From Phaeosaccion multiseriatum (Eukaryota > Protista > Ochrophyta, other classes), in the NCBI GenBank assembly GCA_965112735.1, contig OZ218963.1:1550001-1614000 (forward strand): a stretch of 64,000 nt of DNA, in the 5' to 3' direction. This document shows, piece by piece, positions 2,239 through 42,413 of this stretch. Both the position numbers and the translations under genes were made by a program. The notes beneath the pieces were generated by a model. That model did no database searches. It worked only from the letters and a program-made list of their open reading frames with translations, and was not told where the DNA came from. Positions within the stretch are counted from its first letter, which is position 1. The number at the start of each line of letters is the position of its first letter.

Positions 2239-2773
2239 TGTTACGATATAAGGCATCCCAATATGCCTTCAGTATTATCCAAACGTTTGGATAATACTGA
2301 AGGCATATTGGGATGCCTTATATCGTAACAAAAGGTGGGTTCCTTGAGCCCTACACCTTCGCACCGGGGGGTTGGCGCTACCGACACGTTCGTCCCTAAA
2401 TACTGTCCCTTTGTTTATCCCACCAGTTTTCACGTGCTTTTTTCAACAGGGTACGACCCTCTGGTATCTCCTTGGGAACCCCCCTCGGGAAACATCATAT
2501 TATTTTTTCCTCTTTCCTCAGGTAGGACTCGAACCCCTCTTTTGTTACGATATAAGGCATCCCAATATGCCTTCAGTATTATCCAAACGGCGTTTGGATA
2601 ATACTGAAGGCATATTGGGATGCCTTATATCGTAACAAAAGGTGGGTTCCTTGAGCCCTACACCTTCGCACCGGGGGGTTGGCGCTACCGACACGTTCGT
2701 CCCTAAATACTGTCCCTTTGTTTATACGTTTGGATAATACTGAAGGCATATTGGGATGCCATATATCGTAACA
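2239..2773. mobile_element. Palindromic-repeat element family P2, tandem array P-X-P-partial X-half P
   Basis: Perfect 92-bp palindrome at 2239-2330, internal segment 2331-2542, second palindrome 2543-2637, repeat of the internal start 2638-2724, half palindrome to 2773. No TSD visible. Confidence 0.85.
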
Positions 2774-2916
2774 CCAACCCACCTGCATGACATGACGAGC
2801 GGCGTGATGTGATGCCTCTCCTGCAGATGCTGCTGCTGCTGCTGCTGCTGTCTCGGCGCTGCCTCTGCGGAGCTTTGAGCCGGAGGGACGGAGGGGGGAG
2901 GGAGAGAGGGAGCGCA

Positions 2917-3666
2917 TCAATTCCTACGGGCATCTTCTGCTTTTCTCCTATGCCTCTCTTCCCATGCTTCTCTTCTATGCTCCCTCCCCTCCCCAAAGGA
3001 CTCTCTCTCTCTCTCTCTCAGCCACCCACCCACCTGCATGACGAGCTGCGTGACGCGATGCCTCTCCTGCAGACGCCTGCCCTCCCTTGGCGCCAGCCGC
3101 AGCTGTTCCTCTCCTCCTGAGCTATCTGCCGGTGTCCCTCTTGCTGATGCTTCCTTGGTGCAAGCAGCAGCTGCTTCGGCGCGTGGGAGGGCCGGAGAAG
3201 ACGTCTTTGCTGGTGCTACAGATGGTAGTGGAGAGCCCAGAACTGTGCCCTCTCTCTCCTCAAAGCTGCCTGGAACTACAAATCCCATCTTGGCCCAATT
3301 ACCCCGATTTCTGTCGACCGTTTCCTGGCGTACAGGACCTGGCTTTGCACTTCCCTTCGCGCTCTTGCTCCCTGTGGGTCCTCCTCGCCCTCTCTTTACT
3401 GGCCCAGCAGCCTTCTTTGCTGGCGCTGCAGCTCCATCCAACTTGGCGGAAGTGTCCTTGCTCCCTCGGGGACGTCCTCGCCCCCTCTCTTTCTTCGCAG
3501 GAGGAACTGTAGGAAAAGCAGCAGCAGGAGCAGCAGCTACAGCAGCAGCAAAAATGGCAGTGCGTGCGATGTAGGGGTTAATAGACCCCCGTGCTGCTGC
3601 TTCGAATATCGTGCTAATAGGGCTGGCCCGAAGGGCCAGCCAATTAAATTCAAATTCCCCCACCAC
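2917..3666 (-). CDS. AT-hook-containing ORF fragment, function unknown
   Basis: RGRGRPRGS and KRGRGGP motifs in an Ala/Lys-rich ORF. No other support. Confidence 0.35.
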   Translation of the reverse strand: MVGEFEFNWLALRASPISTIFEAAARGSINPYIARTAIFAAAVAAAPAAAFPTVPPAKKERGRGRPRGSKDTSAKLDGAAAPAKKAAGPVKRGRGGPTGSKSAKGSAKPGPVRQETVDRNRGNWAKMGFVVPGSFEEREGTVLGSPLPSVAPAKTSSPALPRAEAAAACTKEASARGTPADSSGGEEQLRLAPREGRRLQERHRVTQLVMQVGGWLRERERESFGEGREHRREAWEERHRRKAEDARRN

Positions 3667-3720
3667 AACTGGCGACTGGCTAGTGGATTACAACAAGCGA
3701 AGAGACTTTGCCCCCCTTTT

Positions 3721-5828
3721 TTGGCCCTGTATTGGCCTTTCTATGGCTTAGAAGCTGCGAATGAACTGCAGAATACACACTCACAGGGCCCACCATACAT
3801 CTTGCTGGCGGACTGGGTCTCTGGAATGAGCTCGCCATTGCGATTGCGCTTCCAGGTCCGCTTGTCGGTATGCAGCAAGTCTTCTCCTTCCCTGTGTGCA
3901 CGCTCACGCCACCCCTCCCAACCTCCTGCTAATGCCCACACTTCTCGCACATCTTACAGGCCCTATCAACCGCCGCAACAACCACCAGAACCTCCTCAAT
4001 GCACTCAGAGGCAACCTCGGGCCGCTCAGCACTGGCGACAACACCAAGGGACATTCGACATGGGCCCAACCCAGCAGCAGACACAAGAGACGACGATGCT
4101 TCAGCAGCCCAGTGAGCGAAGAGGGTCTTGTCAGGATACGTTTGGATAATACTGATGGCACATCAGACGCCATATATCCTGACAAAAGGTGAGCTCTGGG
4201 AGTCCTACCTTCACATCGAGGGGGTGGATGCTACCAACACGTTCGCTCCTAAATACTGTCCCCATGCCCATACCATTTTTCTAGTTGTTTCACACTTAGG
4301 GTACCACCCTAATCTGGTATCTTTCACGGGCTCCCCCTCCCGGGAATATCTTTTGCCTCTATGGCGCTGGTAGGACTCGAACCCACATTTTGTCAGGATA
4401 TATGGCGTCTGATGTGCCATCAGTATTATCCAAACGTTTAGGTCTCCCCTTCACGGACACCGCAGCGACAGTGGCAGCTCATCATCCAGCAGAGCCGTCC
4501 GTGACAGTCACGCTTGTAGAGGACGGCAGTCGAGGGATGAGCAGCACTCTCTGCCTCAGCTTCAGCATACAGAGAGCTCTCAATCGCGACAGCAAGAAAG
4601 GAAGGAGCAAGAACAGAAGCGTCGTAGACTGCTGGAAATGGTGCTGCAGCTGAGGGAAGACGCTGTGAAGCGCCTTGACTCCATGAAGAGGATACTGCAA
4701 ACACCAGTCAACCACCAGCAACTCTCTCCCCACCGGCAGTCCTCTCCTCCTTCTCAGCGTATGGAGCGGACTCCTTCACCACCACGAGGACGTACTCAGC
4801 AGCGCTCGTCTACAATGTCGCGGCAGCAGCATCAGCAACCTCAGCGCTCGTCTACAACGTCGCGGCAGCAGCAGCATCAGCAGCAGCAGAGACTGGAGAG
4901 TGGGGGGAAGCTCGAGGTACTGGAGGAGGAGAAACAGCGGCTGCAGGTGGAGAAGGAGACACAGCGGCTGCAGGTGGAGAAGGAGAAACGGCGGCTGCAG
5001 GAGGAGGAGGAGAAGGTGAGACAGCAGCAACAGCGCTCACAGCGCCAACAACAAAAGCTGACCAGTGGCGGGCCACAGCAGCACCCGCAGCCCTGTCAGG
5101 AGCAGCTGCTGCAGCGGGAACAACAGTACCATCGGCAAGAGCGAGCACCGCAACAGCAGAGATTGGAGCAAGACCAGAAACGTGAGGGACAGCTCGAGGT
5201 GCAGGAGAAGCGGGAGCAGCTGCTATTGGAGCAAGAGATAGTGAAGGAAGAGCAGCTGCAGCTGGGGGGAAAGCTGGAGAAGGCGGAGAGAGTGAAGGAA
5301 GAGCAGTTGCAACTGGGGGGAAAGGAGGAGAAGACACTTGATCAGCAGCAACTGCATGAGGATGAGACGCAGAAGAAGCAGAGGCAGCTGCTGGTGAAGG
5401 AGGAGCCTCTGCAACTGCAAGAAGAAGGGAAGGATGAGGAGCTAAAGTTGCGATTGGGGAAGGAGGAGTCAACACTGCAGTTGTCTCCACAGGTGGTGCT
5501 GCAGAAGCGCGAGATTGAGCTGCAGGCCTCTCTACAGCAGGATGTGGAGGAAGAGGAGGGCAAGGGAAGCTCCGCTGAGTGGGAGGAGCTTCATTTGTCT
5601 TTGGGCCTGCCGATGGTGGACGCGAACGGGCCTCAGCGCTTAGGTCAGCTGTACCCTGGGCGGATGGCACCAGTTGGCATTGGTACCGGGAGGTTATCAC
5701 CCTTCAGTCATTGGCAGCTTAGTACTGACAGCTTTTGCGGCAGTACTTGTGGATCTTGGATGGGCATGCAAGGGCGCGGAAGATCATGGAGAGAGATGGC
5801 AGCAAAGAGCGGTATGGGGAATGACTGA
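3721..5828 (+). pseudogene. Long Gln/Glu-rich ORF interrupted by a P2 element; probably an accessory or 3' ORF of an LTR retroelement
   Basis: Removing 4129-4445 joins ORF 3721 (…ERRGS) in frame through PLHGHRSD… to ORF 4638-5828. A PPT and LTR follow at 6593-6905. Confidence 0.6.
4129..4440. mobile_element. Palindromic-repeat element family P2 (subfamily b), P-X-P with arm deletions, TSD GGTCT
   Basis: GGTCT at 4124-4128 and 4441-4445. Arms at 4139-4184 and 4391-4436 are inverted copies. The internal region is homologous to 2331-2542. Confidence 0.85.
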
Positions 5829-11109: not shown

Positions 11110-11408
11110 TGTTGTGATAAGTATCGCCATTTGTGACTGAGCACTATATCGACGTACAATATCGATGTGGATATCGATATTCATGTATGGCCACGGCCAT
11201 CACTTCCTTGAACGCATCTCTCAGTAGGTATTATTAATACACGAGTTGACACTACTCTAGCTTGTCCCTGTCATCGTAGAGGAGATATCGCAATACGACA
11301 GCTGTCGCGACACTTCACAGCTAGCTGGTTCTACGTAGTCGGCGACGGCACACAGGCGAGTTTTGGTCGGATAACTCAAGTGAGAGAGAAGGAGTCCTTT
11401 CGTTAGCC

Positions 11409-12239
11409 ATGCCAGGCGCGGAAGAAGAAGGCGTTGAAAAGGCGGACGCAGCGGCGCCCGTCAGTGCGAGTTCCGCGATAGAAGGAGACGCACAGCAGCA
11501 GATGGCTGAAATGATGGAAAAGATGATAGCGGCAGCGTTGGCCAAACACATCACACAGCAAGGAGTGCCCACGGCAGCGGCCGCAGCACCAGTCACTATC
11601 TCCTCAGTCGGAGGAACAGTGACCCCCAGCGGGGGGGGGAGTACAGCACAGCAGCTGCTAGAACTCACGTTCAAGCCGAAGAACAATGAGTTTGACAAGA
11701 AGTTGGAATCGGAGGGAGTGATGCCTCTCTTGCGATTTATGCGAGCGGTCACGGATCACATAGGGGGGATGGGGGCAAAGGCATTCTTGGTGGATAGTGA
11801 TAAGATCCCCAACGCAGACGACGCCTTCCGGGACTCTAAGTATGCCCTGACGTTCAGTCTGTACCAACAGACGGGCCTCAAGATTTTGGAGGCCATTCCC
11901 TCGGACATGAGGGATGCCATAGAAGAACGCACTCGCACAGCGCGGTTCCAAGTGGACCTGGTACTATTGATGCAGGCAATCAAGGAGGCAGTGATGGGGA
12001 GCACGCAGTCACAGCGACAAGAGTTTCTCACCTCCGAGATGCACGATCTGAGGCCAGGGGTGGGGGAGACGGGACTTGCCTACCTCAACAAGTTTCTCCA
12101 ACTCAACGTGTTGATGACGGAGGAGCAGCTTCCTATGTCCTACTCCATCATCAAGGACAAGTTCCTCAGGCGTATGGGGCAGAGATGGGAGTCGTTCGGC
12201 CAAGTGCACGGTCATTCGGTAGAGACAGGACGAGTTTAA
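11409..12239 (+). CDS. gag: Copia-2 gag N-terminal part (frameshift near 12222-12239)
   Basis: First ORF after the 5' LTR. The +1 frame is open from ~12223 and leads into the Zn knuckles. Confidence 0.8.
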   Translation: MPGAEEEGVEKADAAAPVSASSAIEGDAQQQMAEMMEKMIAAALAKHITQQGVPTAAAAAPVTISSVGGTVTPSGGGSTAQQLLELTFKPKNNEFDKKLESEGVMPLLRFMRAVTDHIGGMGAKAFLVDSDKIPNADDAFRDSKYALTFSLYQQTGLKILEAIPSDMRDAIEERTRTARFQVDLVLLMQAIKEAVMGSTQSQRQEFLTSEMHDLRPGVGETGLAYLNKFLQLNVLMTEEQLPMSYSIIKDKFLRRMGQRWESFGQVHGHSVETGRV

Positions 12240-12255
12240 TCGGTTCAAACAGCAA

Positions 12256-14547
12256 GTGCAGCGGTTTGACAGTGACCTCCAAGCGCAAGCGAGGGAGGCG
12301 GGAGAGGACCTTGAGCGGGGCCTTTTCCACATTTACCAGCAAAGGCAGAAGACACAGCAACCAGCAGGGGGGGGTAGACAGACCACCACAGGGGCAGGAG
12401 AGAAAGATCGGTCCAACACACGCTGTTACAGGTGTGGGAGAAAGGGGCACATGCGGACGACGTGTCCGTCCAAGGAGGAGCTGTGTTTCAACTGCCACAA
12501 GCCGGGGCACCAGCGTGCAGACTGCCCAAACAGCAGGAAGAAGAAAGATGGCGAGCATGTGGAAGGCTCCACCAGCGCCATTTTCAGCATTCCGTGGACG
12601 CTACAGGAGAGGGGGAGCGGCCATTCTCTCTACCATATGTCCAAGCTGAAGTCGGGGGCGGATGGCACACGGCAGGGGCTCGCAGACAGCGGATCGGCGC
12701 TCAATGTGTGGCCCAACTTGGATGGACTGTACGATTTCTGCGCTCATCAGAGTTTAGTGCAACTCGCAGACGGCAAGTCGCACGCGCAGATAATGGGCAA
12801 AGGGAAGGTGAACATCAGCTACGTCTCCAACGACGGCAAAAGAGGACTGAAGGGGCTGGAGGTAGTGGTGTCGCCAGACGTACCTTTCTGCATTTTTGCA
12901 GAGAAGAACCTCTCAGACCTACTGGGGGGGAGCGCAAGGCCAGCGGGGAAGCCAGTCTATTTCGGCCCCTCAGCAGACGCACCAGAGACGGTGCACACGA
13001 CGCAGGACCCAGAGCTGGGGCTTGACATGCTACAATTCAAGATCGAGGAGACCACGGAGCAGTGGAGTGATTACATGACTTACCACTGCAAGAAGGGCCA
13101 CCGCAACGATCAAGAACTACGGCGACAGGCCAAGCTGGAGGGCGTGACACTGTGCGGGAAGAGGGCGCCGTGCAAGACTTGCGCAGAGGTGAAGATGACG
13201 AAGGCAGCTCAGAGTAAGCAGTTCATCGACTACCCCAAGGCACCGCTGGCACAGGTAACGCTCGACACCATTCCTCTCGAAGGAGAGCACGTGTTGCAGG
13301 CGTGCTGCCCGCACACGGGTATGGGCTGGTGCAGGAAGGTGGGGGGAAAGACGGAGGCGCACTTCCAGAGCGTGTATGACGACCTCAACACCACAGTATT
13401 CATTCCAGGGGAGAGGACAGCGGGGTACAAGGTGCAGTGTCTGTCAGCAGACAACGGATCGGAGCTCATCAAGACGAAGGCAGCGAAGAAGATGCTCTAC
13501 TCCCAGGGCATTGAGGTCAAGCTGACGGACCCCAATTGTCAAGCGCAGAACGGACTGAACGAGGCTCGACACAAGGAGCTGGCGCGAATGTCTATTCTTT
13601 TCATTGAGGAGGCGAAGCTGGAGGAGCACTCGAAGCAGCTGAGGTTCGTAGCGTACAAGTTGGCGCAGCTTCTCTACAACACCAGGTGCAGGAGGGGGCA
13701 GCAGCAGTCCCCCTACGAGCTGTATTTCAAGCGCAAGCCTGACCTACAGCACCTACACATCTTCGGAGAGCAGGCGAAGGTGCGGGTGGGCAACAAGAAG
13801 CACAAGCAGTGGCACAACGACAAGACGCACTCGGCAGTGTACGTGGGACAGAGCCCCAACCACAGATCAGCCTGTCTCCTTTTCTACATCCCTTCACAGA
13901 AGCGGTTCATCTCCAGCTCGTCCTACACATTCGTGACGAACCGCAGACACGACGGCACGGTGTTCGGGAGTCACGTGGAGAAGGGGAAGCTACCAGAGAC
14001 AGCGGAGAAGGAGGATGACAGCGAGGACGAGGACCAGCCCTCGAGCAGCGGGAGCAGCAGCAGGAGCAGCAGCAGGAGCAGCAGCAGGAGCAGCAGCAGT
14101 AGCGCGAGCGGGGGAGGTGGGGGCGGGACCAAGAGTGGAACCGTCACATGGAACACGAGATTAGAGGAGGCACAGCCAGCCCCACAGCAGCAACAGACAT
14201 CACGCTGGGAACAGGTTCTCACCCGAGAGTTCGTGGAGAAGTTACAACTCGAAGGAGAAGGCCTGGAGCGACGTCAGCACGCCGAGCGGCAACAGAGGGA
14301 GCAGACGGCAAAGCAGCAACAGAGAGAGCAGCAGAAACAGCAAGTAGAGCAGCAAGAGCAGCAGCAGCAGCAGGCAGAGCAGCAACAGGCAGAGCAGCAG
14401 CAGGAAGAGCCAACGCAGCAGGCTGAGCCGCCAGAGAGAGGCAAACTCTGGACATACGAGGTGGCCAAAGATGGCGACAAGGGAGCCAAGGAGCACGACT
14501 GGGGCCACGATCCCAGCCTGGGCCGCACGCGTAGCGGCAAGCACTGA
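12256..14547 (+). CDS. pol: Copia-2 Zn knuckles, aspartic protease and integrase
   Basis: CYRCGRKGHMRTTC, CFNCHKPGHQRADC, ADSGSA, HCKKGH…CKTC, SADNGSE, QNGLNE. Confidence 0.92.
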   Translation: MQRFDSDLQAQAREAGEDLERGLFHIYQQRQKTQQPAGGGRQTTTGAGEKDRSNTRCYRCGRKGHMRTTCPSKEELCFNCHKPGHQRADCPNSRKKKDGEHVEGSTSAIFSIPWTLQERGSGHSLYHMSKLKSGADGTRQGLADSGSALNVWPNLDGLYDFCAHQSLVQLADGKSHAQIMGKGKVNISYVSNDGKRGLKGLEVVVSPDVPFCIFAEKNLSDLLGGSARPAGKPVYFGPSADAPETVHTTQDPELGLDMLQFKIEETTEQWSDYMTYHCKKGHRNDQELRRQAKLEGVTLCGKRAPCKTCAEVKMTKAAQSKQFIDYPKAPLAQVTLDTIPLEGEHVLQACCPHTGMGWCRKVGGKTEAHFQSVYDDLNTTVFIPGERTAGYKVQCLSADNGSELIKTKAAKKMLYSQGIEVKLTDPNCQAQNGLNEARHKELARMSILFIEEAKLEEHSKQLRFVAYKLAQLLYNTRCRRGQQQSPYELYFKRKPDLQHLHIFGEQAKVRVGNKKHKQWHNDKTHSAVYVGQSPNHRSACLLFYIPSQKRFISSSSYTFVTNRRHDGTVFGSHVEKGKLPETAEKEDDSEDEDQPSSSGSSSRSSSRSSSRSSSSSASGGGGGGTKSGTVTWNTRLEEAQPAPQQQQTSRWEQVLTREFVEKLQLEGEGLERRQHAERQQREQTAKQQQREQQKQQVEQQEQQQQQAEQQQAEQQQEEPTQQAEPPERGKLWTYEVAKDGDKGAKEHDWGHDPSLGRTRSGKH

Positions 14548-14583
14548 CATGCTGTCTCCTCCATACTAGGCCCACTCTTTCTG

Positions 14584-16191
14584 ATGCCAGGCCTAAAGGA
14601 GAGCGAGGTACCGATACCGCGGTCTCTGGCCCAGGCTCAAGCAGGAGAGTACGCGGAGCAATGGACGGAGGCGTACTGGGCAGAGCTCAACGCGATCGAG
14701 CAAAGCCAGGTATGGGAGGAGGTTGATTATCAAGAGGGGATGAATGTGCTGCATACAGTCATGCTATTCAGAGCAAAGGTGACTGGGGGACTTGTGGATA
14801 GGCTCAAGTGTCGATTTGTCGTGATGGGGAACGAGCAGATCGAGGGGGAGGATTACTTTGATACCTTTGCACCAGTGGTGGGGAGCTCGACGATGAAGAT
14901 GTTCTTTGCTATCACGTGCCAGAAGAAGTGGGTATTGGAGTTTGCAGATGTGGAGACGGCTTTCCTGCATGCACCTCTGCATGAGGGGGAGTACGTGTAC
15001 ATTAGAGCACCAGAGGGCATGAGAAAGTTCGGGAAGGTGCTGAGGCTGTTGAAGAGTCTGTACGGTCTTCATCAGTCTCCCAAGAGGTGGAACGAGACAG
15101 TGGTGGCATTTCTACTCGCAATGGGGTGGGTACAGTGCCCAGTGGATCCGTGTCTGTTCGCCAGGTTCGAGGAGGGGGAGCTAATAGGGCTCATCATTCT
15201 ATATGTAGACGACCTAGGAGGGTCAGGGGAGGGAAATCTCATTGACTGCACTTTCAAGGAGATTGACGAGCGTTTCAAGTTGAAGCGTTTGGGGTCGAAT
15301 GTGGGGAAATTTCTGGGAGTTGAAGTTGACTACGCATTCGAGGCGGGACAGCTCAGGCTTTCGCTAGGAGGGTATCTTAGAGCGATGCTTGAGAAGTTCG
15401 ACATGACGGAGGTACCTGTGTACGGCTCACCAGCAGAGCAGGGGGTACATTTGTCAGTGGGTATGGAGCCAAGCACCACAGAGGAGGAGGAATTCATGCA
15501 GGACAAACCATACTGCTCAGCGGTAGGGTCAATCCTATGGGTTGCCAACTGGGTGAGGCTTGATGTATCCTTCGCCATCATGCAGTGTGCTCGTTTTATG
15601 AAGAGGCCGGGGCCTCGACACTGGGCAGCATTGCAGCGCATTTTCGGGTACTTTAGAGGTAGTTTAGACTTGGGAATTGAGTTTGATCGAGAGGCGGGGC
15701 TTCATCTGGAGGCATACGCAGACTCGAGCTGGGCAGATGACGTCGACAGGCGCAGGAGCTCAGGGGGATACGTCGTGACATTCGGCGGGGGAGTGATTGC
15801 TCACAAGGCAACACTATTTAAGGTCATAGCACAGTGCTCTATGGAGAGTGAGTACATGGCCGCAGCGGAAGCAGTGAAGGAGTTGCTGTTTCACAGAGGG
15901 ATTCTGGAGTTTCTGTTTCCAGGAGCCAACATGACGGAGTCGATTGTGCACGAGGACAATCAAGGGTGCATTCAGATGGCAAATGGCAACGCGGGCACCA
16001 AGCGCGTACGTCACATCGACATTCGTTATCATTTCCTGCAGTACCACGTGGACAAGGGACACGTTCGGTTTCAGTACATCAGCACAAAGGACCAGCTTGG
16101 GGACATCATGACCAAGGCATTGGCACCTCAGGTACACAGCGGTCTGGCGGGGCAGATGCTCAAGAAGGGAGACAGGAAAGGGGGGGACTAG
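14584..16191 (+). CDS. pol: Copia-2 reverse transcriptase plus RNase H
   Basis: DVETAFLHA, LKSLYGLHQSP, LYVDDL, YADSSWA, EDNQGC, RHIDIRYH, DIMTKAL. Same frame as 12256-14547 after one TGA. Confidence 0.96.
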   Translation: MPGLKESEVPIPRSLAQAQAGEYAEQWTEAYWAELNAIEQSQVWEEVDYQEGMNVLHTVMLFRAKVTGGLVDRLKCRFVVMGNEQIEGEDYFDTFAPVVGSSTMKMFFAITCQKKWVLEFADVETAFLHAPLHEGEYVYIRAPEGMRKFGKVLRLLKSLYGLHQSPKRWNETVVAFLLAMGWVQCPVDPCLFARFEEGELIGLIILYVDDLGGSGEGNLIDCTFKEIDERFKLKRLGSNVGKFLGVEVDYAFEAGQLRLSLGGYLRAMLEKFDMTEVPVYGSPAEQGVHLSVGMEPSTTEEEEFMQDKPYCSAVGSILWVANWVRLDVSFAIMQCARFMKRPGPRHWAALQRIFGYFRGSLDLGIEFDREAGLHLEAYADSSWADDVDRRRSSGGYVVTFGGGVIAHKATLFKVIAQCSMESEYMAAAEAVKELLFHRGILEFLFPGANMTESIVHEDNQGCIQMANGNAGTKRVRHIDIRYHFLQYHVDKGHVRFQYISTKDQLGDIMTKALAPQVHSGLAGQMLKKGDRKGGD

Positions 16192-16519
16192 TTTTAGTTC
16201 AGTAGTTTTAGTATGAGGTTTTCAGGACTTTGTCTCGGGGGGGTTTTAGGACAAGTCAGGTGTTTCCTCATTGTGTTTGTGGTAGAGTGTCAGCTATCAA
16301 GAGAGATAGTGATTCAGTCATAGGAGGGTGTTGTGATAAGTATCGCCATTTGTGACTGAGCACTATATCGACGTACAATATCGATGTGGATATCGATATT
16401 CATGTATGGCCACGGCCATCACTTCCTTGAACGCATCTCTCAGTAGGTATTATTAATACACGAGTTGACACTACTCTAGCTTGTCCCTGTCATCGTAGAG
16501 GAGATATCGCAATACGCTC

Positions 16520-37439: not shown

Positions 37440-40320
37440 GCGAGTCGCTTGCGGGTGTGCCATCTCCGGAAGCACGCCTCCTCTCCTTTGGAGTTAGAGA
37501 CGCAGAGGTACACTCGACATGTGGGACAGCGATACCAAGACCGTTGTTCTTGGCAGTACTGGCTGGCAACGAGGACTCTGCTTGGGCACGCCGTCCGCCC
37601 CCGCCCTGTGCGACATGCTCTGCGGGATGTGGTCGAGGGAGCGGTTGAGTCTGAATGCACAGCCTTCTCCGCCCTCGTCGAAGTACGGTATCCTGTACCT
37701 CGCAGGGGGGGCACAGATGCGCGAGTCCCGCGGCGCCCTTCCGGCCGAGCGGCCCTCCTTCCTCGAGCTGCTGTTATCCTCCTCATTGACTGCTGACTGA
37801 GCAACACCCTGCTGCCTACCCCCTGCCTTCCCGTCCTCTGGACTTGGCGTGCCTTCCTGAGCTTCCTCCAACAGCTGGAACCCCGCGGCGTAGGCGAAGT
37901 CCGCCAGGCTGCAGACTCTGTTGAGCTGACGGCGGTGTCCATTCATCCCACGGTATTGGCCTTTTTGGAGATGCTCAGCGCCGACCTTACGCATGCGGAA
38001 GGCGAGGAAGGCGTTGGTGCTGAGGCTCTGCAGTGTCGAAAGCACCACTCTCTGCTGCCACGTTGCGCGTTGGTTCTCCTTCGTTATCACTTGACGCTAT
38101 TGCGTGTGGCCGTCCACCCCCCCCCTTTGTCCGGGAGTACACAAGACTTCTTGTACGCCGTACGCTCGAACTCGCCAACCAAGCTCGTAAGATCGCGTGC
38201 GCCTACCCAGGCGCCCTGCTTGGACACCGCCAGACGAAAGGAAGGGTGAAGAGAGGAGGAGGGGGAGAGGAGTGTGGGTGTTGGGCGCGTGGTTGGGGCG
38301 GTGGACGGCAGCAGGCACGGACTGGGTGTAAAGGAAGTCCCAACAGCGGATGCGGACAAGTCGGAGTGTTAGAAGTCGTACTTTTGCTAGACTGATACCT
38401 GCCCTCTGAATTCAGACCGGGAGGTATCAGTCTAGCAAAAGTACGACTTCTAACAAGACCGTTGCTAGAAGACGAACCCCCCCCCCCCACCGCACATAGT
38501 GGAGAGAAGTAACTCGCAGTCTGAGAATCAGCATCATGGGCCAGCAAGCTGGTAACAGTTTTCGCCGAAAAATACGCTTTTTCACAAGCGACAGCTAAGG
38601 TTCGAACTCACAACTAGCCTTGTTAGAAGTCGTACTTTTGCTAGACTGATACCTGCCCTCTGAATAAAATAATAAATAAATATTATTATTTTATTCAGAG
38701 GGCAGGTATCAGTCTAGCAAAAGTACGACTTCTAACAAGGCTAGTTGTGAGTTCGAACCTTAGCTGTCGCTTGTGAAAAAGCGTATTTTTCGGCGAAAAC
38801 TGTTACCAGCTTGCTGGCCCATGATGCTGATTCTCAGACTGCGAGTTACTTCTCTCCACTATGTGCGGTGGGGGGGGGGGGTTCGTCTTCTAGCAACGGT
38901 CTTGTTAGAAGTCGTACTTTTGCTAGACTGATACCTCCCGGTCTGAATTCAGAGGGCAGGTATCAGTCTAGCAAAAGTACGACTTCTAACAGGAGGAAAC
39001 ACTGACTACGGCTGTTCCACTACAACCTCCCACGCGCACCATCCTTCCTACTCACCTGATGGTCCTGCAGCGGCATGGGAGAGTACGGCAGGAGGTACCC
39101 CATGATCTCATTGAATCGGTCCACTGTAAGGGGCGTCAGGCCCAAGCGCTCCATTATGTCCACGTCCATCTTGAGTGACTTGCTGCTCGTAGACGTAATC
39201 AGGAACATCCCCATCCACTGCTCCATCTCCTTTGTCGTCACGTCCGCCCTTTCCTTCGGCCCCTCGCCCGTCCTCCCCCCTGCTGCCTCCGAGTCGTTTA
39301 AGTGAATACTTTCGTTCGCCCACTCCCTCAGGAGACGCACCGCATCGCCGACAAAGAAGCGAATAGCGTCCGCCTCCGAGGATGGATAAATTCTTTGCCC
39401 GCATGTAAATCCTGAGTTTGTTCACGACACTGGCAGAGACCAACCTATACCTCTCTTCGATGAAGTCTTCCCCAACACTTTCCCCCTGCTGGAGCTGCAG
39501 ATTGAATTTCGTGCCAGCACGGCCAGGCTTCACGAGTCTTTTCCATCCATGCGCCGGGCCCTTCTCCTCTGCCCAACCATCGGCCAGCCCTTGCCTCCGC
39601 GTCGCTCCTCGCCCTCGCCCAGCTGCTGCCACTCCACCTCCTCTGCCTCGTCCTCCTCGGCCTCTTCCTCTGCTCGATCCGGGGCCTTGTAACCCTCCGG
39701 CGAAGACTGGGCCATTGGTCCTTAAGCCCCCATTCGGTTGACCACTTCCTGCCTCCCGTTCTGTGCTCATGTTCACACCACCTCCTCCTCCTCTTCCCTT
39801 CCCTCCTGCGCCTCTACTACTTCCCGCCAAATTCGCGACGCTAGCAGGCGCCGCAGATGGTGCGATACCAGTCGCACTGCCACTTGCACTGTCCTGCCTA
39901 AGGTGATGGCCAGACAGAGGCTGCAGTGTGGCGCTCCAGTTCTCCTTGTCTGTGAGCTGCATTCCCGTATCAGCACCAGAGTCAAAGAACCGTGGGCCGC
40001 CTGCTGCCGAGGCCGCCCCCCCGCCGAGTTGAGCTGAGACTGGTGGTGCGGCTCCTTCTTTCCCCGCCATCTTCGTCGACGTACTCGCTGTCATAGTACC
40101 GTCTACTTTGGGGTTAGCTGCACACGCCGACACACTCATTCTTCTCTTGCTCTGGTCTCCCCCCTGTCCTGGTTGCTGCGGTTCTGCTGACCCACTATCG
40201 GCCACATTTCCATCCTTAAACCTGGAATTCTCCTTCCGTTTCCTCTGTCCCCTCCTTATGTGTGACGGCGAAGGCTCCTGAGCCATCTTGCGCTGCTGTG
40301 TGCCCGTCTGCATGGCATTT
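37440..40320 (-). pseudogene. piggyBac-type transposase pseudogene with intron (39055-38216); most of the catalytic core is missing
   Basis: VTTKEMEQWMGMFL…DRFNEIM, KGGVD-like segment near 38110-38130, WQQRVVL…NAFLAF, C-terminal Cys-rich domain RSWYRCPTCRVYLC…CFRRWH. Several frameshifts. Confidence 0.75.
38367..38991. mobile_element. Head-to-head P1 dimer forming a 625-bp palindrome, TSD GGAG
   Basis: P 38367-38455, inverted X 38456-38620, central P with AT filler 38621-38737, X 38738-38902, P 38903-38991. GGAG at 38363-38366 and 38992-38995. Confidence 0.92.
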
Positions 40321-40754: not shown

Positions 40755-42413
40755 ATGCACGACGGGACAGCGATGGCGCGGGGAGAAGCAGATGGAGGAG
40801 GAGACACACTCCCACCGTCGGCAGCACCAGCCCCAGCACCAGCACCAGCAGCACCAGCAGCAGCACCAGCGGGGGGGGTTGCGTTCCGAGCGTCTCACGT
40901 CGATCACCCCGAGGAGCCTCGCCAGATCATCGCCATGGTGTGCATGGTGGGGGTGGTGGCGGGAGTGGGCCTACGACGAGAGAGCTCCGATCCTCGCGAC
41001 AATGCTAGGGCCGCCTTGCTTGGGGGCATGGTGATTTACCTCACACACTCCTTCCTGCAGCTGCGTGACAGTGTGTTTGTGAGGCCGCATCCCGGGTTCT
41101 GGAGAGTGGTGCACGGTGCGGGAACCATGTACCTTGTGCTGCTGGGTGCGGCCCTGTTCCTCAGCAGAGACAACGCCGTCAACATGGTGGACATTTTGTT
41201 CTCTTCGGAGAAGCCTTCGCTTGCTGCTGCTCCTGCTGCTGCTGCTGCCGCCCAGGTGCCGTCCAATCATCCGGTTCAGATGAAGTGCGAGCTGACATGG
41301 CAGCACCTGTGGGGCCAGCTGACGGAGGTGTGGTTCTTTGCGCATGTGTCCGGCTGGTGGGGCAAAATGTGCATCTTCCGGGACTGGAAAATCTGCTGGG
41401 TACTGTCCATTGGCTTTGAGATTTTGGAGCTATCAATGGGATGGATGGTGCCCCAGTTTAAAGAGTGCTGGTGGGACTCGCTCTTCGTGGACCTCCTGGG
41501 CGCCAACCTCATTGGAATGGTCCTCGGCACATACACCCTCCGCTTTCTGGAGAACCGTAACTACGACTTCGCCGGACATCGGCCGAGGAACGGAGGAGGT
41601 ACCAGAGTGCAACGGGCGCTAGTACGCTTCAGCCCCTTCAGCTGGAACAAGTGGGAGTGGGAGGTGTTCTCGTCCCCCAAGCGCTTTATGCAGATTGTCA
41701 TGCTGGTGTCGGTGGTGCTCATGACGGAGCTCAATGCCTTTATGCTTCTCAATGCCCTCGACATTCCCAAGAGCAGCATTTTCCACAAGGCTCGGCTATG
41801 CCTCTTGGCCCTTGTGGGGTCGCTAGGCACCGCTGAATTTTACGAATACATCACCAAACCCGCAAACCAAAGGATTGGGCCCAACATGTGGCTCATCAGC
41901 GCCCTCATGCAGCTCGAGATTCTGGTGTGGGTGAAATTCATGCCCTCCCAAATCCTCTCCCAGAACAGCCCCATGGCCGTCAAAGGCCCCCTGCTTCTCA
42001 CCATGTCCCTCTTTTGCATGTGGGCGCTGCTCTTTTTCACCATGAACAAGCCTTCGACAGTGAGCGGGGGGAGTGGGTTGTGCACCACAGCTGGAAGCAG
42101 CAATAGTGGTAGCGATGGCAGTAGAGGGAGGGAGGGCAGCGGTTGCACCAACGGATGTAGAGGAGGCACGCAGGGGATGGAGAACGTGGACAGCGCTGTC
42201 TCGCTACAGCAACCGCAGCAGCAGGAGCAGGAGCAGGAGCAGGCCGAACGGCAGCGCAAGGACTGGGAGGGTGGGCCGGCGGCCTCGGTTGGGGTGGTGG
42301 AGGCTTTGAAGCACCTCAACACCGTTGACCTGCTGAAATGGCTGGGACTGGACTTGCTCTTTTTTGCGTCCTTTCTCCCTCTCGGCTGGCTCGTCAAGCA
42401 GTACTACTACTGA
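40755..42413 (+). CDS. PSS: Phosphatidylserine synthase, base-exchange (PTDSS) type; intronless
   Basis: RPHPGFWRVVHG, AHVSGWWGK, SIGFEILEL, FKECWWDSLFVDLLGANLIG and TELNAF motifs with multiple TM segments. Confidence 0.95.
   Translation: MHDGTAMARGEADGGGDTLPPSAAPAPAPAPAAPAAAPAGGVAFRASHVDHPEEPRQIIAMVCMVGVVAGVGLRRESSDPRDNARAALLGGMVIYLTHSFLQLRDSVFVRPHPGFWRVVHGAGTMYLVLLGAALFLSRDNAVNMVDILFSSEKPSLAAAPAAAAAAQVPSNHPVQMKCELTWQHLWGQLTEVWFFAHVSGWWGKMCIFRDWKICWVLSIGFEILELSMGWMVPQFKECWWDSLFVDLLGANLIGMVLGTYTLRFLENRNYDFAGHRPRNGGGTRVQRALVRFSPFSWNKWEWEVFSSPKRFMQIVMLVSVVLMTELNAFMLLNALDIPKSSIFHKARLCLLALVGSLGTAEFYEYITKPANQRIGPNMWLISALMQLEILVWVKFMPSQILSQNSPMAVKGPLLLTMSLFCMWALLFFTMNKPSTVSGGSGLCTTAGSSNSGSDGSRGREGSGCTNGCRGGTQGMENVDSAVSLQQPQQQEQEQEQAERQRKDWEGGPAASVGVVEALKHLNTVDLLKWLGLDLLFFASFLPLGWLVKQYYY

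Follow-up and report, generated by a model that had tools for sequence, protein, structure and literature searches.

What kind of element ends in a perfect palindrome, and how are its two arms kept complementary? The question is raised by the 64,000-nt window analyzed here (the whole stretch of Phaeosaccion multiseriatum DNA under study; positions below are those of the window), in which TGT..ACA palindromes border a short non-coding segment at 2239–2773 and a diverged relative interrupts an open reading frame at 4129–4440. An earlier note on this DNA assigned both to one family, P2, and proposed that the arms are copied from each other during replication. The present analysis confirms P2 as a genuine family of non-autonomous elements that moved recently in this stramenopile alga.

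Structure of the array at 2239–2773

The locus was confirmed as an array, composed of a palindrome, a core, a second palindrome, a truncated core and half of a palindrome. The first palindrome (2239–2330) is perfect over 92 bp and has TGT..ACA ends. Its 46-nt arms, a (2239–2284) and a′ (2285–2330), meet at the centre AAACGTTT, and as single-stranded DNA it folds with −50.4 kcal/mol (z = −23). The core on the plus strand (2331–2542) comprises 212 nt and is non-coding. The ~13 nt at either end of the core form inverted repeats, which lengthen the arms to a terminal inverted repeat (TIR) of 59 nt (97%). An invariant motif resembling a tRNA T-arm/B box, GGGTTCGAGTCCTACC, lies on the minus strand at 2521–2536, 9 nt from the palindrome.

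The second palindrome (2543–2637) retains both arms intact around a 3-nt centre insert, ggc; short-read contigs contain ggc-type as well as gcgc-type centres. The second core copy (2638–2725, plus strand) is truncated after position 88, and a single arm a′ (2726–2773) with one mismatch and no partner arm ends the array. The initial description of 92-bp palindromes around a segment of ~210 bp in tandem therefore needs amendment: it fits the first palindrome and its core, whereas the second palindrome carries an insert, the second core is cut short and the supposed third palindrome is one arm. No clean target site duplication (TSD) was found for the array; ACCTG recurs 7 nt past its right end.

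A diverged copy within an open reading frame

The copy at 4129–4440, representing subfamily B, is flanked by 5-bp TSDs, GGTCT, at 4124–4128 and 4441–4445, as had been proposed. Its left palindrome consists of a 10-nt outer-arm remnant, TGTCAGGATA (4129–4138), and the inner arm a′ (4139–4184). The core (4185–4390, plus strand) is 71% identical to core A and ~81% identical to the core type of locus L019, and the B-box-like motif lies on its minus strand at 4369–4384. The right end (4391–4440) comprises the inner arm a followed by GTTT and A as the outer-arm remnant. The outer arms are thus nearly lost, with 10 nt on the left and 4 + 1 nt on the right.

The B inner arms (4139–4184 and 4391–4436), which belong to separate palindromes, are 46/46 complementary to each other and yet ~20% diverged from A. 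A B-type palindrome is present at locus L060, with a centre deletion. Arms of A and B differ at ~10 of 46 positions and by one indel, and each end of the element shows these differences in mirrored form. That the subfamilies diverged while each kept its own arms complementary is supported by these mirrored differences, with the qualification that the 46/46 match in B spans two palindromes.

Deleting 4129–4445 in silico left the frame open through the junction for at least 602 aa, compared with 148 aa in the presence of the element, in agreement with the claim that its removal re-fuses the frame. In contigs from two further runs, 4129 is followed directly by 4447 and 317 nt are missing. This gap has the length of the 312-nt element together with its 5-nt TSD and hence indicates an empty allele or orthologue. 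An empty site is also known for a second P2 insertion, L016 (C14:1547035–1547363), located in an upstream gene paralog. The flanks of L016, joined without one TSD, aligned unbroken to window positions 4978–5136, with the paralogous empty site AGGTG at 5014–5018.

Copy number, target sites and mode of insertion

P2 elements are ~400 bp long, lack coding capacity and carry a palindrome at either end with a core between. The genome count was ~111 arms at ~40 loci, and the read depth of the arms was ~100x single copy, in line with the assembled copy number. Young copies are 99–100% identical to one another. Further TSD-flanked copies, whose absence would have refuted the earlier proposal, do occur: clean 5-bp TSDs lie outside TGT..ACA at no fewer than 18 loci, and likewise at L073. 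The 20 TSDs compared showed no consensus. The termini are TGTTA or TGTCA, i.e., TGTNR. Multimers with cores in either orientation bear TSDs of their own, as do lone 92-bp palindromes (L064, L065) and centre-altered ones (L066, L067, L073). Because such near-solo palindromes have their own TSDs, the 92-bp palindrome by itself may suffice for insertion.

The TSDs and empty sites rule out a satellite or segmental duplication as the identity of P2. No longer element bearing P2 arms was found in the genome; extra matches of the outer 16-mer were all truncated remnants, and an autonomous copy carrying these arms was rejected on this ground. Searching metagenomes with the arm 16-mer, a pattern too short for this use, returned 120 single chance matches, none extending beyond 24 nt. 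The existence of a second family of the same design was borne out by P1, which has the P2 architecture and occurs mainly as inverted dimers whose two units meet at one shared palindrome.

P2 is inserted as linear double-stranded DNA, TGTNR..ACA, by a 5-bp staggered cut without target preference. This combination is the signature of a DDE integrase of the retroviral/LTR-retrotransposon type. Termini of this TGTNR form also occur in Gypsy LTRs and in Ginger elements (PMC2836005). Gypsy and Copia elements resident in the genome are of recent origin, with Copia LTRs identical at 188/188 positions; similarity between the P2a end and the resident Copia U5 end is weak (9/12). Judging from sequence features, we favor, with a probability of about 45%, a reading in which P2 is a TRIM-like mini-element that owes its insertion to a retroviral-type integrase and the rebuilding of its ends to fold-back synthesis.

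TG..CA ends with a 5-bp TSD, arrays with shared repeats (P-core-P-core-P), solo repeats and young resident Gypsy and Copia elements would also fit a classical TRIM/SMART LTR retrotransposon, whose LTR became palindromic through selection for a hairpin (promoter, packaging or dimerisation) and which passed through ordinary strand transfers. We regard this as quite improbable. No primer binding site (PBS), i.e., no tRNA-complementary TGG.. after the 5′ repeat, was found at the P2 core edges, nor was a polypurine tract (PPT) found upstream of the 3′ repeat. Moreover, units within an array differ from one another as much as unlinked copies do, and the junctions between them vary, so that unequal crossing-over offers no explanation for the arrays.

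The same absence of PBS and PPT fits the main rival, in which P2 is a MITE of a Ginger/TDD-like cut-and-paste transposon and the palindrome plus core edge forms a long TIR. Concordant arms and centre inserts would then date from after insertion: the palindrome would extrude as a hairpin or cruciform, mismatches in its stem would be repaired, and error-prone repair would act on its tip. P2 has its TGTNR ends and 5-bp TSD in common with TDD-4/5 (PMC2836005). Both core edges read ACA/AAAG(R)GGGTTC inward, and this full symmetry of the ends (59-nt TIR, identical inward motif), with no PBS/PPT asymmetry, resembles DNA transposons and argues against a retroelement. Deletions at microhomologies (ACG) and duplicated arms, both characteristic of unstable palindromes, were also numerous. 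However, the TSDs show neither the CCGG/CCGT preference of Ginger1 nor the RTATAY preference of metazoan Ginger2, and no autonomous element with P2 arms was found. We judge the MITE reading somewhat unlikely.

Copying between arms

Among 36 palindromes, 8 arm substitutions were concerted and 12 affected a single arm. In four centre inserts, a sequence N is followed by a loop and then by the reverse complement of N. Inserts of this form require synthesis across untemplated sequence into the arm, with one arm serving as template for its partner; a palindrome can therefore gain its second arm as a copy of the first. The concerted substitutions and mirrored inserts uphold the copying proposed in the earlier note, but not its timing at replication or transposition. 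Copying could occur when a hairpin is repaired in situ or through gene conversion between arms, and the private concerted substitutions of the L007 array fit in situ conversion, as the Ginger/TDD MITE reading would have it. For a classical TRIM/SMART element these data are unfavorable, since the mirrored hinge inserts demand fold-back synthesis and selection alone is unlikely to have produced the ~10 compensatory pairs of changes that separate A from B.

Variation at palindrome centres

Centre inserts were present in 14 of 36 palindromes, with arms intact to the last base in 14/14, and they are unlike at the two ends of one element, which speaks for separate construction of each end. Centres differ within L002, L004, L009, L010 and the window copy, with cores 99–100% identical between copies; P2 copies more than 99% identical nearly all have different centres. 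The intact arms and the unlike centres both weigh against the MITE reading; in the case of the intact arms, this is because repair of a break at the centre usually deletes sequence. LTR-type strand transfer also fits badly with a young element whose two palindromes differ at the centre, given that LTRs are identical at insertion, and the label "LTR-like" is accordingly doubtful. In P1, as in two simple P2 copies, asymmetric centres nevertheless point the same way at both ends, in the manner of direct repeats and of a classical TRIM/SMART element. Direct and inverted arrangements of the whole repeat are indistinguishable, the repeat being palindromic.

At position 43, which lies 4 nt from the centre, an A/G mismatch was inherited in at least 11 independent insertions. 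Independent CpG decay was rejected as its source, because ~20 palindromes are heterozygous at this position and none is G/G. Assembly artefacts at the centres were also rejected, as short-read contigs hold both variants at depths matching the assembled copy numbers. The heritable asymmetry indicates that the central ~8 nt are templated separately and that a palindrome is not rebuilt over its whole length from one arm; the arms are thus not fully regenerated in every cycle. Passage of the mismatch as DNA is what the MITE reading would predict.

Asymmetric centres exist in flip and flop states, and each P2 arm contains a small internal hairpin. These features, the palindromic termini at both ends and the single-junction inverted dimers predominant in P1 would suit a defective parvovirus-like or hairpin-telomere replicon that multiplies through rolling-hairpin synthesis with a HUH Rep or telomere resolvase and is secondarily integrated. 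We consider such an origin very improbable. Flip and flop are concordant, not independent, between the ends of the few informative copies; regular 5-bp TSDs with TGTNR..ACA point to a DDE integrase, HUH insertion being normally TSD-free; the agreement of arm depth with assembled copy number gives no sign of an episomal pool; and no linked Rep-like gene was found. A Replitron/HUH reading was rejected because of the regular 5-bp TSDs at non-specific targets. In P2 inverted dimers the outer centres are not mirrored, contrary to the expectation for whole-element snap-back, and this counts against the fold-back reading favored above.

Core motifs and predicted transcript

The T-arm/B-box-like segment is the most conserved part of the core and is invariant across all subfamilies. 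ARAGORN called no tRNA in the element and Rfam yielded no match at the gathering score, with only spurious miRNA-hairpin matches below it; a tRNA gene or permuted tRNA was rejected. P2 also differs from tRNA-derived SINEs in having the B-box-like segment only, no 3′ tail and a TSD fixed at 5 bp.

The minus strand of the core contains A4+ runs and no T4 before the border. In the minimum-energy fold of the predicted RNA, the 3′ UUUU+C pairs at positions 46–50, directly after the arm, with a fold z-score of only −1.5. On the minus strand, wobble pairing can accommodate the changes in the core-end helix, although these number ~4 and are non-independent. The P1 core has T5 runs on both strands; a full-length Pol III transcript is therefore not general to the design.

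Proposed mechanism and significance

For P2 as an integrase-inserted, TRIM-like mini-element, the template would be a minus-strand Pol III transcript, which we infer to start near the palindrome centre. The putative promoter would combine an A-box-like motif in the inner arm with a perfect B box on the edge of the core. The transcript would end at TTTT, at the far core/palindrome border. Its 3′ end would pair next to the arm, so that self-primed reverse transcription would copy the arm. A 3′ end finishing at, or 4 nt beyond, the AACGTT centre, often with a few untemplated bases, would fold back or anneal to a like end and be extended. This fold-back step would generate concerted arm changes and mirrored untemplated hinge sequence, and would give every palindrome an individual centre with the central ~8 nt templated apart. 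Direct and inverted multimers may result from joining or from recombination at palindromes, and the enzymes would be supplied by resident LTR elements.

A broader version, which we judge unlikely, would unite P2, P1 and sister families in an undescribed class of retroelements. Here a centre-started Pol III transcript would self-prime, fold-back or end-annealing would rebuild the palindromes, and a resident Copia or Gypsy integrase would insert the product, including even the bare 92-bp palindrome formed from two strong-stop-like arms. Perfect terminal palindromes combined with LTR-like insertion and arm-to-arm copying are described for no transposon class that we found, and the literature search on palindromic or inverted LTRs returned nothing relevant.

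If correct, palindromic repeats rebuilt by fold-back would represent a third route of end regeneration besides LTR strand transfer and TIR cut-and-paste, and natural integrase substrates would extend down to 92 bp. P2 provides a sequence record of in vivo snap-back synthesis in its mirrored untemplated hinges and concerted arm changes, and arm copying accounts for the persistence of normally unstable perfect palindromes at dozens of loci. Two exon insertions predicted to be precisely spliceable hint at another route of intron gain. With several families of one design in a single stramenopile genome, the question is testable using RNA and long reads from the same strain.

Comparison with known systems

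Parvovirus and AAV ITRs are hairpin-forming palindromes with inner hairpins, flip/flop states and head-to-head dimers, in which one arm is repaired or copied from its partner. P2 has these palindrome, hairpin, flip/flop, dimer and arm-copying features by analogy only: it is a gene-free chromosomal algal repeat of ~0.4 kb with an integrase-type TSD, and no Rep gene or nick site was identified. Like Foldback (FB) elements and hairpin MITEs, P2 is strongly self-complementary, unstable and internally variable. In FB elements, however, the TIRs consist of subrepeats in long arrays and the TSDs measure 9 bp, whereas each P2 end is a single exact palindrome with TGT..ACA ends and a 5-bp TSD.

Introner elements are transposon-derived introns. 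The exon insertions at 4129 (GGTCT) and L016 (AGGTG) are similar in that GT is predicted to come from the TSD and AG from the element end plus TSD; predicted splicing at both sites would remove exactly the element and one TSD. Unlike introners, P2 occupies only ~40 loci, mostly non-genic, and its predicted splice sites depend on chance TSD sequence.

Ginger2 and TDD-4/5 have TGTNR termini, TIRs of 50–180 bp, a 4–5-bp TSD and integrase-related DDE chemistry (PMC2836005). P2 shares the TGTNR termini, the presence of a TIR, the 5-bp TSD and the signature of a DDE integrase. It differs in that no transposase-bearing partner was found among elements with P2 arms, RTATAY/CCGG preference is absent and every TIR comprises a full palindrome with a hypervariable centre.

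In contrast to TRIM/SMART elements, the terminal repeat of P2 is a perfect palindrome, its two repeats differ at their centres, PBS and PPT are lacking, inverted repeats mark both edges of the core, cores lie in either orientation and some copies are inverted dimers. In common with TRIM/SMART, P2 is shorter than 1 kb and non-coding, has TG..CA terminal repeats and a 5-bp TSD, forms arrays that share terminal repeats and leaves solo repeats. Cassandra, a TRIM, carries a Pol III 5S promoter within its LTR; similarly, P2 has a Pol III-type promoter motif in or beside the repeat and presumably relies on resident LTR enzymes.

Structure of P2 in the Window

The window covers C14:1550001-1614000 in an assembly of 67.1 Mb and 22 contigs. 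The array of the P2 family (subfamily A) at 2239-2773 begins with a perfect 92-bp palindrome, P (2239-2330), directly followed by a core of 212 nt (2331-2542). P consists of a 46-nt arm a, starting with TGTTACG and ending with CCAAAC, and its reverse complement a'; folded as single-stranded DNA, it reaches −50.4 kcal/mol (z = −23 versus shuffles). The outermost ~13 nt at both core ends are inverted repeats as well, so that inner arms and core edges together form 59-nt terminal inverted repeats with 97% complementarity. The earlier note had described a direct tandem array here, built from a perfect 92-bp palindrome flanking a ~210-bp segment, and a diverged copy at 4129-4440. This was confirmed with corrections: the second palindrome (2543-2637) has both arms intact but carries ggc in its centre, the second core (2638-2725) is broken off after position 88, and the supposed third palindrome is a lone arm a' (2726-2773) closing the array.

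The diverged copy (4129-4440) represents subfamily B, with arms 80% and core 71% identical to A. Its inner arms are complementary at 46/46 positions, and all that remains of its outer arms is 10 nt at the left end and GTTT + A at the right end. No clean target-site duplication (TSD) was found for the window array; ACCTG repeats 7 nt past its irregular right end. A tandem duplication of ~246 bp spans the right flank (2774-3076; 2791-2830 versus 3037-3076, 90%), which makes the target site harder to read.

Mobility and Insertion Sites

P2 is a mobile element. The genome contains ~111 arm matches, versus 0 for the reversed-pattern control, at ~40 loci, many of them on C14, the contig of the window. 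Further TSD-flanked copies, on which the earlier note had made its proposal depend, exist: the outermost TGT..ACA is flanked by a 5-bp direct repeat at at least 18 loci (including L073). The TSD-flanked forms include single P-core-P copies, lone 92-bp palindromes (L064 and L065; with altered centre L066, L067 and L073), deletion derivatives (L056 and L057) and whole multimers (L019, with four cores in 1014 bp; L002, L010 and L026, with inverted cores).

Contigs from another sample with the same organism label join 4129 to 4447, skipping 317 nt (312 + 5), as do contigs of a 90-95% related organism from a plant metagenome; the exact 4129-4440 copy is present in the source sample's own runs. Deleting 4129-4445 from the sequence restores a reading frame of at least 602 aa, in agreement with the ORF re-fusion previously claimed. 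Another insertion (L016, C14:1547035-1547363, TSD AGGTG) sits in the upstream paralogue of the gene hit at 4129, and when its flanks are fused with one TSD left out, they give an uninterrupted alignment with window 4978-5136. Recent activity is indicated by young copies that share 99-100% identity.

Both insertions (window 4124-4445 and L016) lie in coding exons of two paralogous Q/E-rich coiled-coil genes. With the TSDs GGTCT and AGGTG, a GT in the left TSD and an AG formed where the element end meets the right TSD would, as splice sites, remove exactly the element and one copy of the TSD (chance per site ~0.04), a configuration that appears introner-like. Elsewhere in the window, a phosphatidylserine synthase ORF (40755-42413) has at most 49% identity to Tribonema, brown algal and oomycete proteins, which places the host among the stramenopiles, probably as an ochrophyte alga.

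Evidence for Arm-to-Arm Copying

The proposal that arms are copied from each other is supported by concerted substitutions, mirrored subfamily differences and mirrored centre inserts. Among 36 complete palindromes, with position 43 counted apart, 8 complementary substitutions were present in both arms (L007, L019, L056, L061, L062) and 12 in a single arm; at 1-2% divergence, identical chance hits in both arms would be vanishingly rare. At each end of the B copy, the A/B differences (~10 positions and one indel) recur in mirrored form. Hairpin mismatch repair in situ could also produce concerted arm changes.

Centre inserts occur in 14/36 palindromes, all with both arms whole to the last base. 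Nine consist of G/C only and measure 1-10 nt (g, ggc, gccc, gcgc twice, ggggc, gcgcgc, ggccccgc, gggcgccggc), while four have the form N + loop + rc(N) (one 14-mer, two 16-mers and one 48-mer). An inverted dimer of P1, the second family with palindromic ends, has a similar mirrored hinge that is AT-only (38367-38991). A mirrored untemplated N is explicable only if synthesis continued past the end of the first arm and through N, then turned back to copy N followed by the arm; such inserts are direct evidence of synthesis by snap-back or end annealing. Short-read contigs also contain the ggc and gcgc centres, with read depths of about 1 and 2.6 times that of a single copy; these variants are therefore real.

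Position 43, 4 nt from the centre, limits the inference. In older subfamilies the two arms differ here, with A in one and G in the other; this pairing occurs in ~20 palindromes, which stem from at least 11 independent insertions, in either orientation relative to the core, and G/G never occurs. The asymmetry is therefore inherited rather than recurrent decay, and for the ~8 nt around the centre, templating must take place as a unit. Some ends finish at a + GTTT (window 4437-4440; L068), which fits a strand reaching 4 nt beyond the centre and annealing via the AACGTT hexamer.

Arms also collapse or duplicate recurrently (L014, L016, L066, L073; window 4129-4140) at two microhomologies, ACG (arm positions 5-7 and centre) and the 7-nt inner hairpin AAGGCAT/ATGCCTT, yielding mini-palindromes of 42-50 nt or tandem arms that keep TGT..ACA ends. 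Partnerless single arms lie inside a (GAGT)n microsatellite in L054 (C1:1232606-1232977; three arm + microsatellite repeats spaced 157-169 nt) and L068 (C16:164353-164445).

Apparent Separate Origin of Palindromes

Centres differ between the two palindromes of the same young element in L002, L004, L009, L010 and the window copy. In the four-core array L007, units differ among themselves as much as unlinked copies do, and every junction is distinct. Each palindrome was thus apparently made separately, and the arrays look joined rather than duplicated. That P2 is an ordinary TRIM is improbable, since its terminal repeats are not identical in young elements and neither a primer binding site nor a polypurine tract (PBS/PPT) could be recognised.

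Few simple copies are informative on the asymmetric centre (P1 at 36455 and the one in the dimer; L017 and L019 of P2); in these it points the same way at both ends, and its orientation relative to the core flips from copy to copy. Core inversion via recombination of the inner arms would explain the flip. L007 (C12:3039993-3041386) interrupts a P1 inverted dimer at its hinge: on either side lie P1 arms and cores in mirror image. At least 75 genome matches belong to P1, many as minus/plus pairs ~212 nt apart; unlike P2, its main form seems to be an inverted dimer with one common palindrome.

Candidate RNA Stage

Read on the minus strand, the edge of the core that adjoins the palindrome is GGGTTCGAGTCCTACC, a perfect B box invariant across all subfamilies, and an A-box-like AGGCATATTGG lies ~36 nt upstream in the inner arm. 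Given their positions, Pol III transcription would start close to the centre of the palindrome. The minus strands of A, C and B contain A4+ runs and no T4 until a TTTT is reached where the far end of the core borders the palindrome. When the predicted RNA is folded at minimum energy, its last five bases pair with positions 46-50, directly 3' of the arm, which would provide the geometry required for self-primed arm copying. One-sided changes in the 16-bp core-end helix are all wobble-compatible on the minus strand, except for one pair broken in 2/7 sequences. An RNA intermediate is possible. Against it count a fold z-score of only −1.5, the lack of any tRNA call in P2, T5 runs in the P1 core, and an overall symmetry that looks like that of a DNA transposon.

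Insertion Machinery and Relation to Known Elements

P2 termini are TGTTA in A and TGTCA in B, and P1 also starts with TGTTA; all match the TGTNR pattern common to Gypsy LTRs and Ginger transposons (PMC2836005). These ends and the transposon-type symmetry would suit a Ginger-like MITE whose palindromes change in place after insertion. However, the 20 P2 TSDs have no consensus and show neither the CCGG target of Ginger1 nor the RTATAY target of metazoan Ginger2, and no Ginger partner carrying P2 arms was found, leaving this origin rather unlikely, though a serious competitor. No P2 copy has coding capacity and the extra genomic matches of the outer 16-mer are all truncated remnants, which makes P2 a non-autonomous family.

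At 9/12 positions, with CGATAT in common, the P2a (subfamily A) end agrees with the reverse complement of the U5 end from the resident Copia, and P1 resembles the U3 start of Gypsy; these likenesses are only suggestive. The window Copia (11110-16516, TSD CGCTC) is young, as its LTRs (11110-11297 and 16329-16516) are identical at 188/188 positions. They end in ..GCAATA instead of CA, and the 12-bp palindrome CGACAGCTGTCG occupies the expected PBS place. A Gypsy element is also present in the window.

Our preferred reading of P2, with a probability of roughly 45%, is a mini-element that an integrase inserts and whose palindromic ends fold-back synthesis rebuilds. No element with palindromic LTR-like ends was found in the open-access literature searched, an absence that is not proof of novelty. 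The features of P2 do not fit a Rep-type transposon. Its likeness to parvoviral ITRs is analogy only, and a rolling-hairpin replicon is very improbable. At the insertion step, P2 is alike to both TRIM/SMART elements and Ginger/TDD MITEs.
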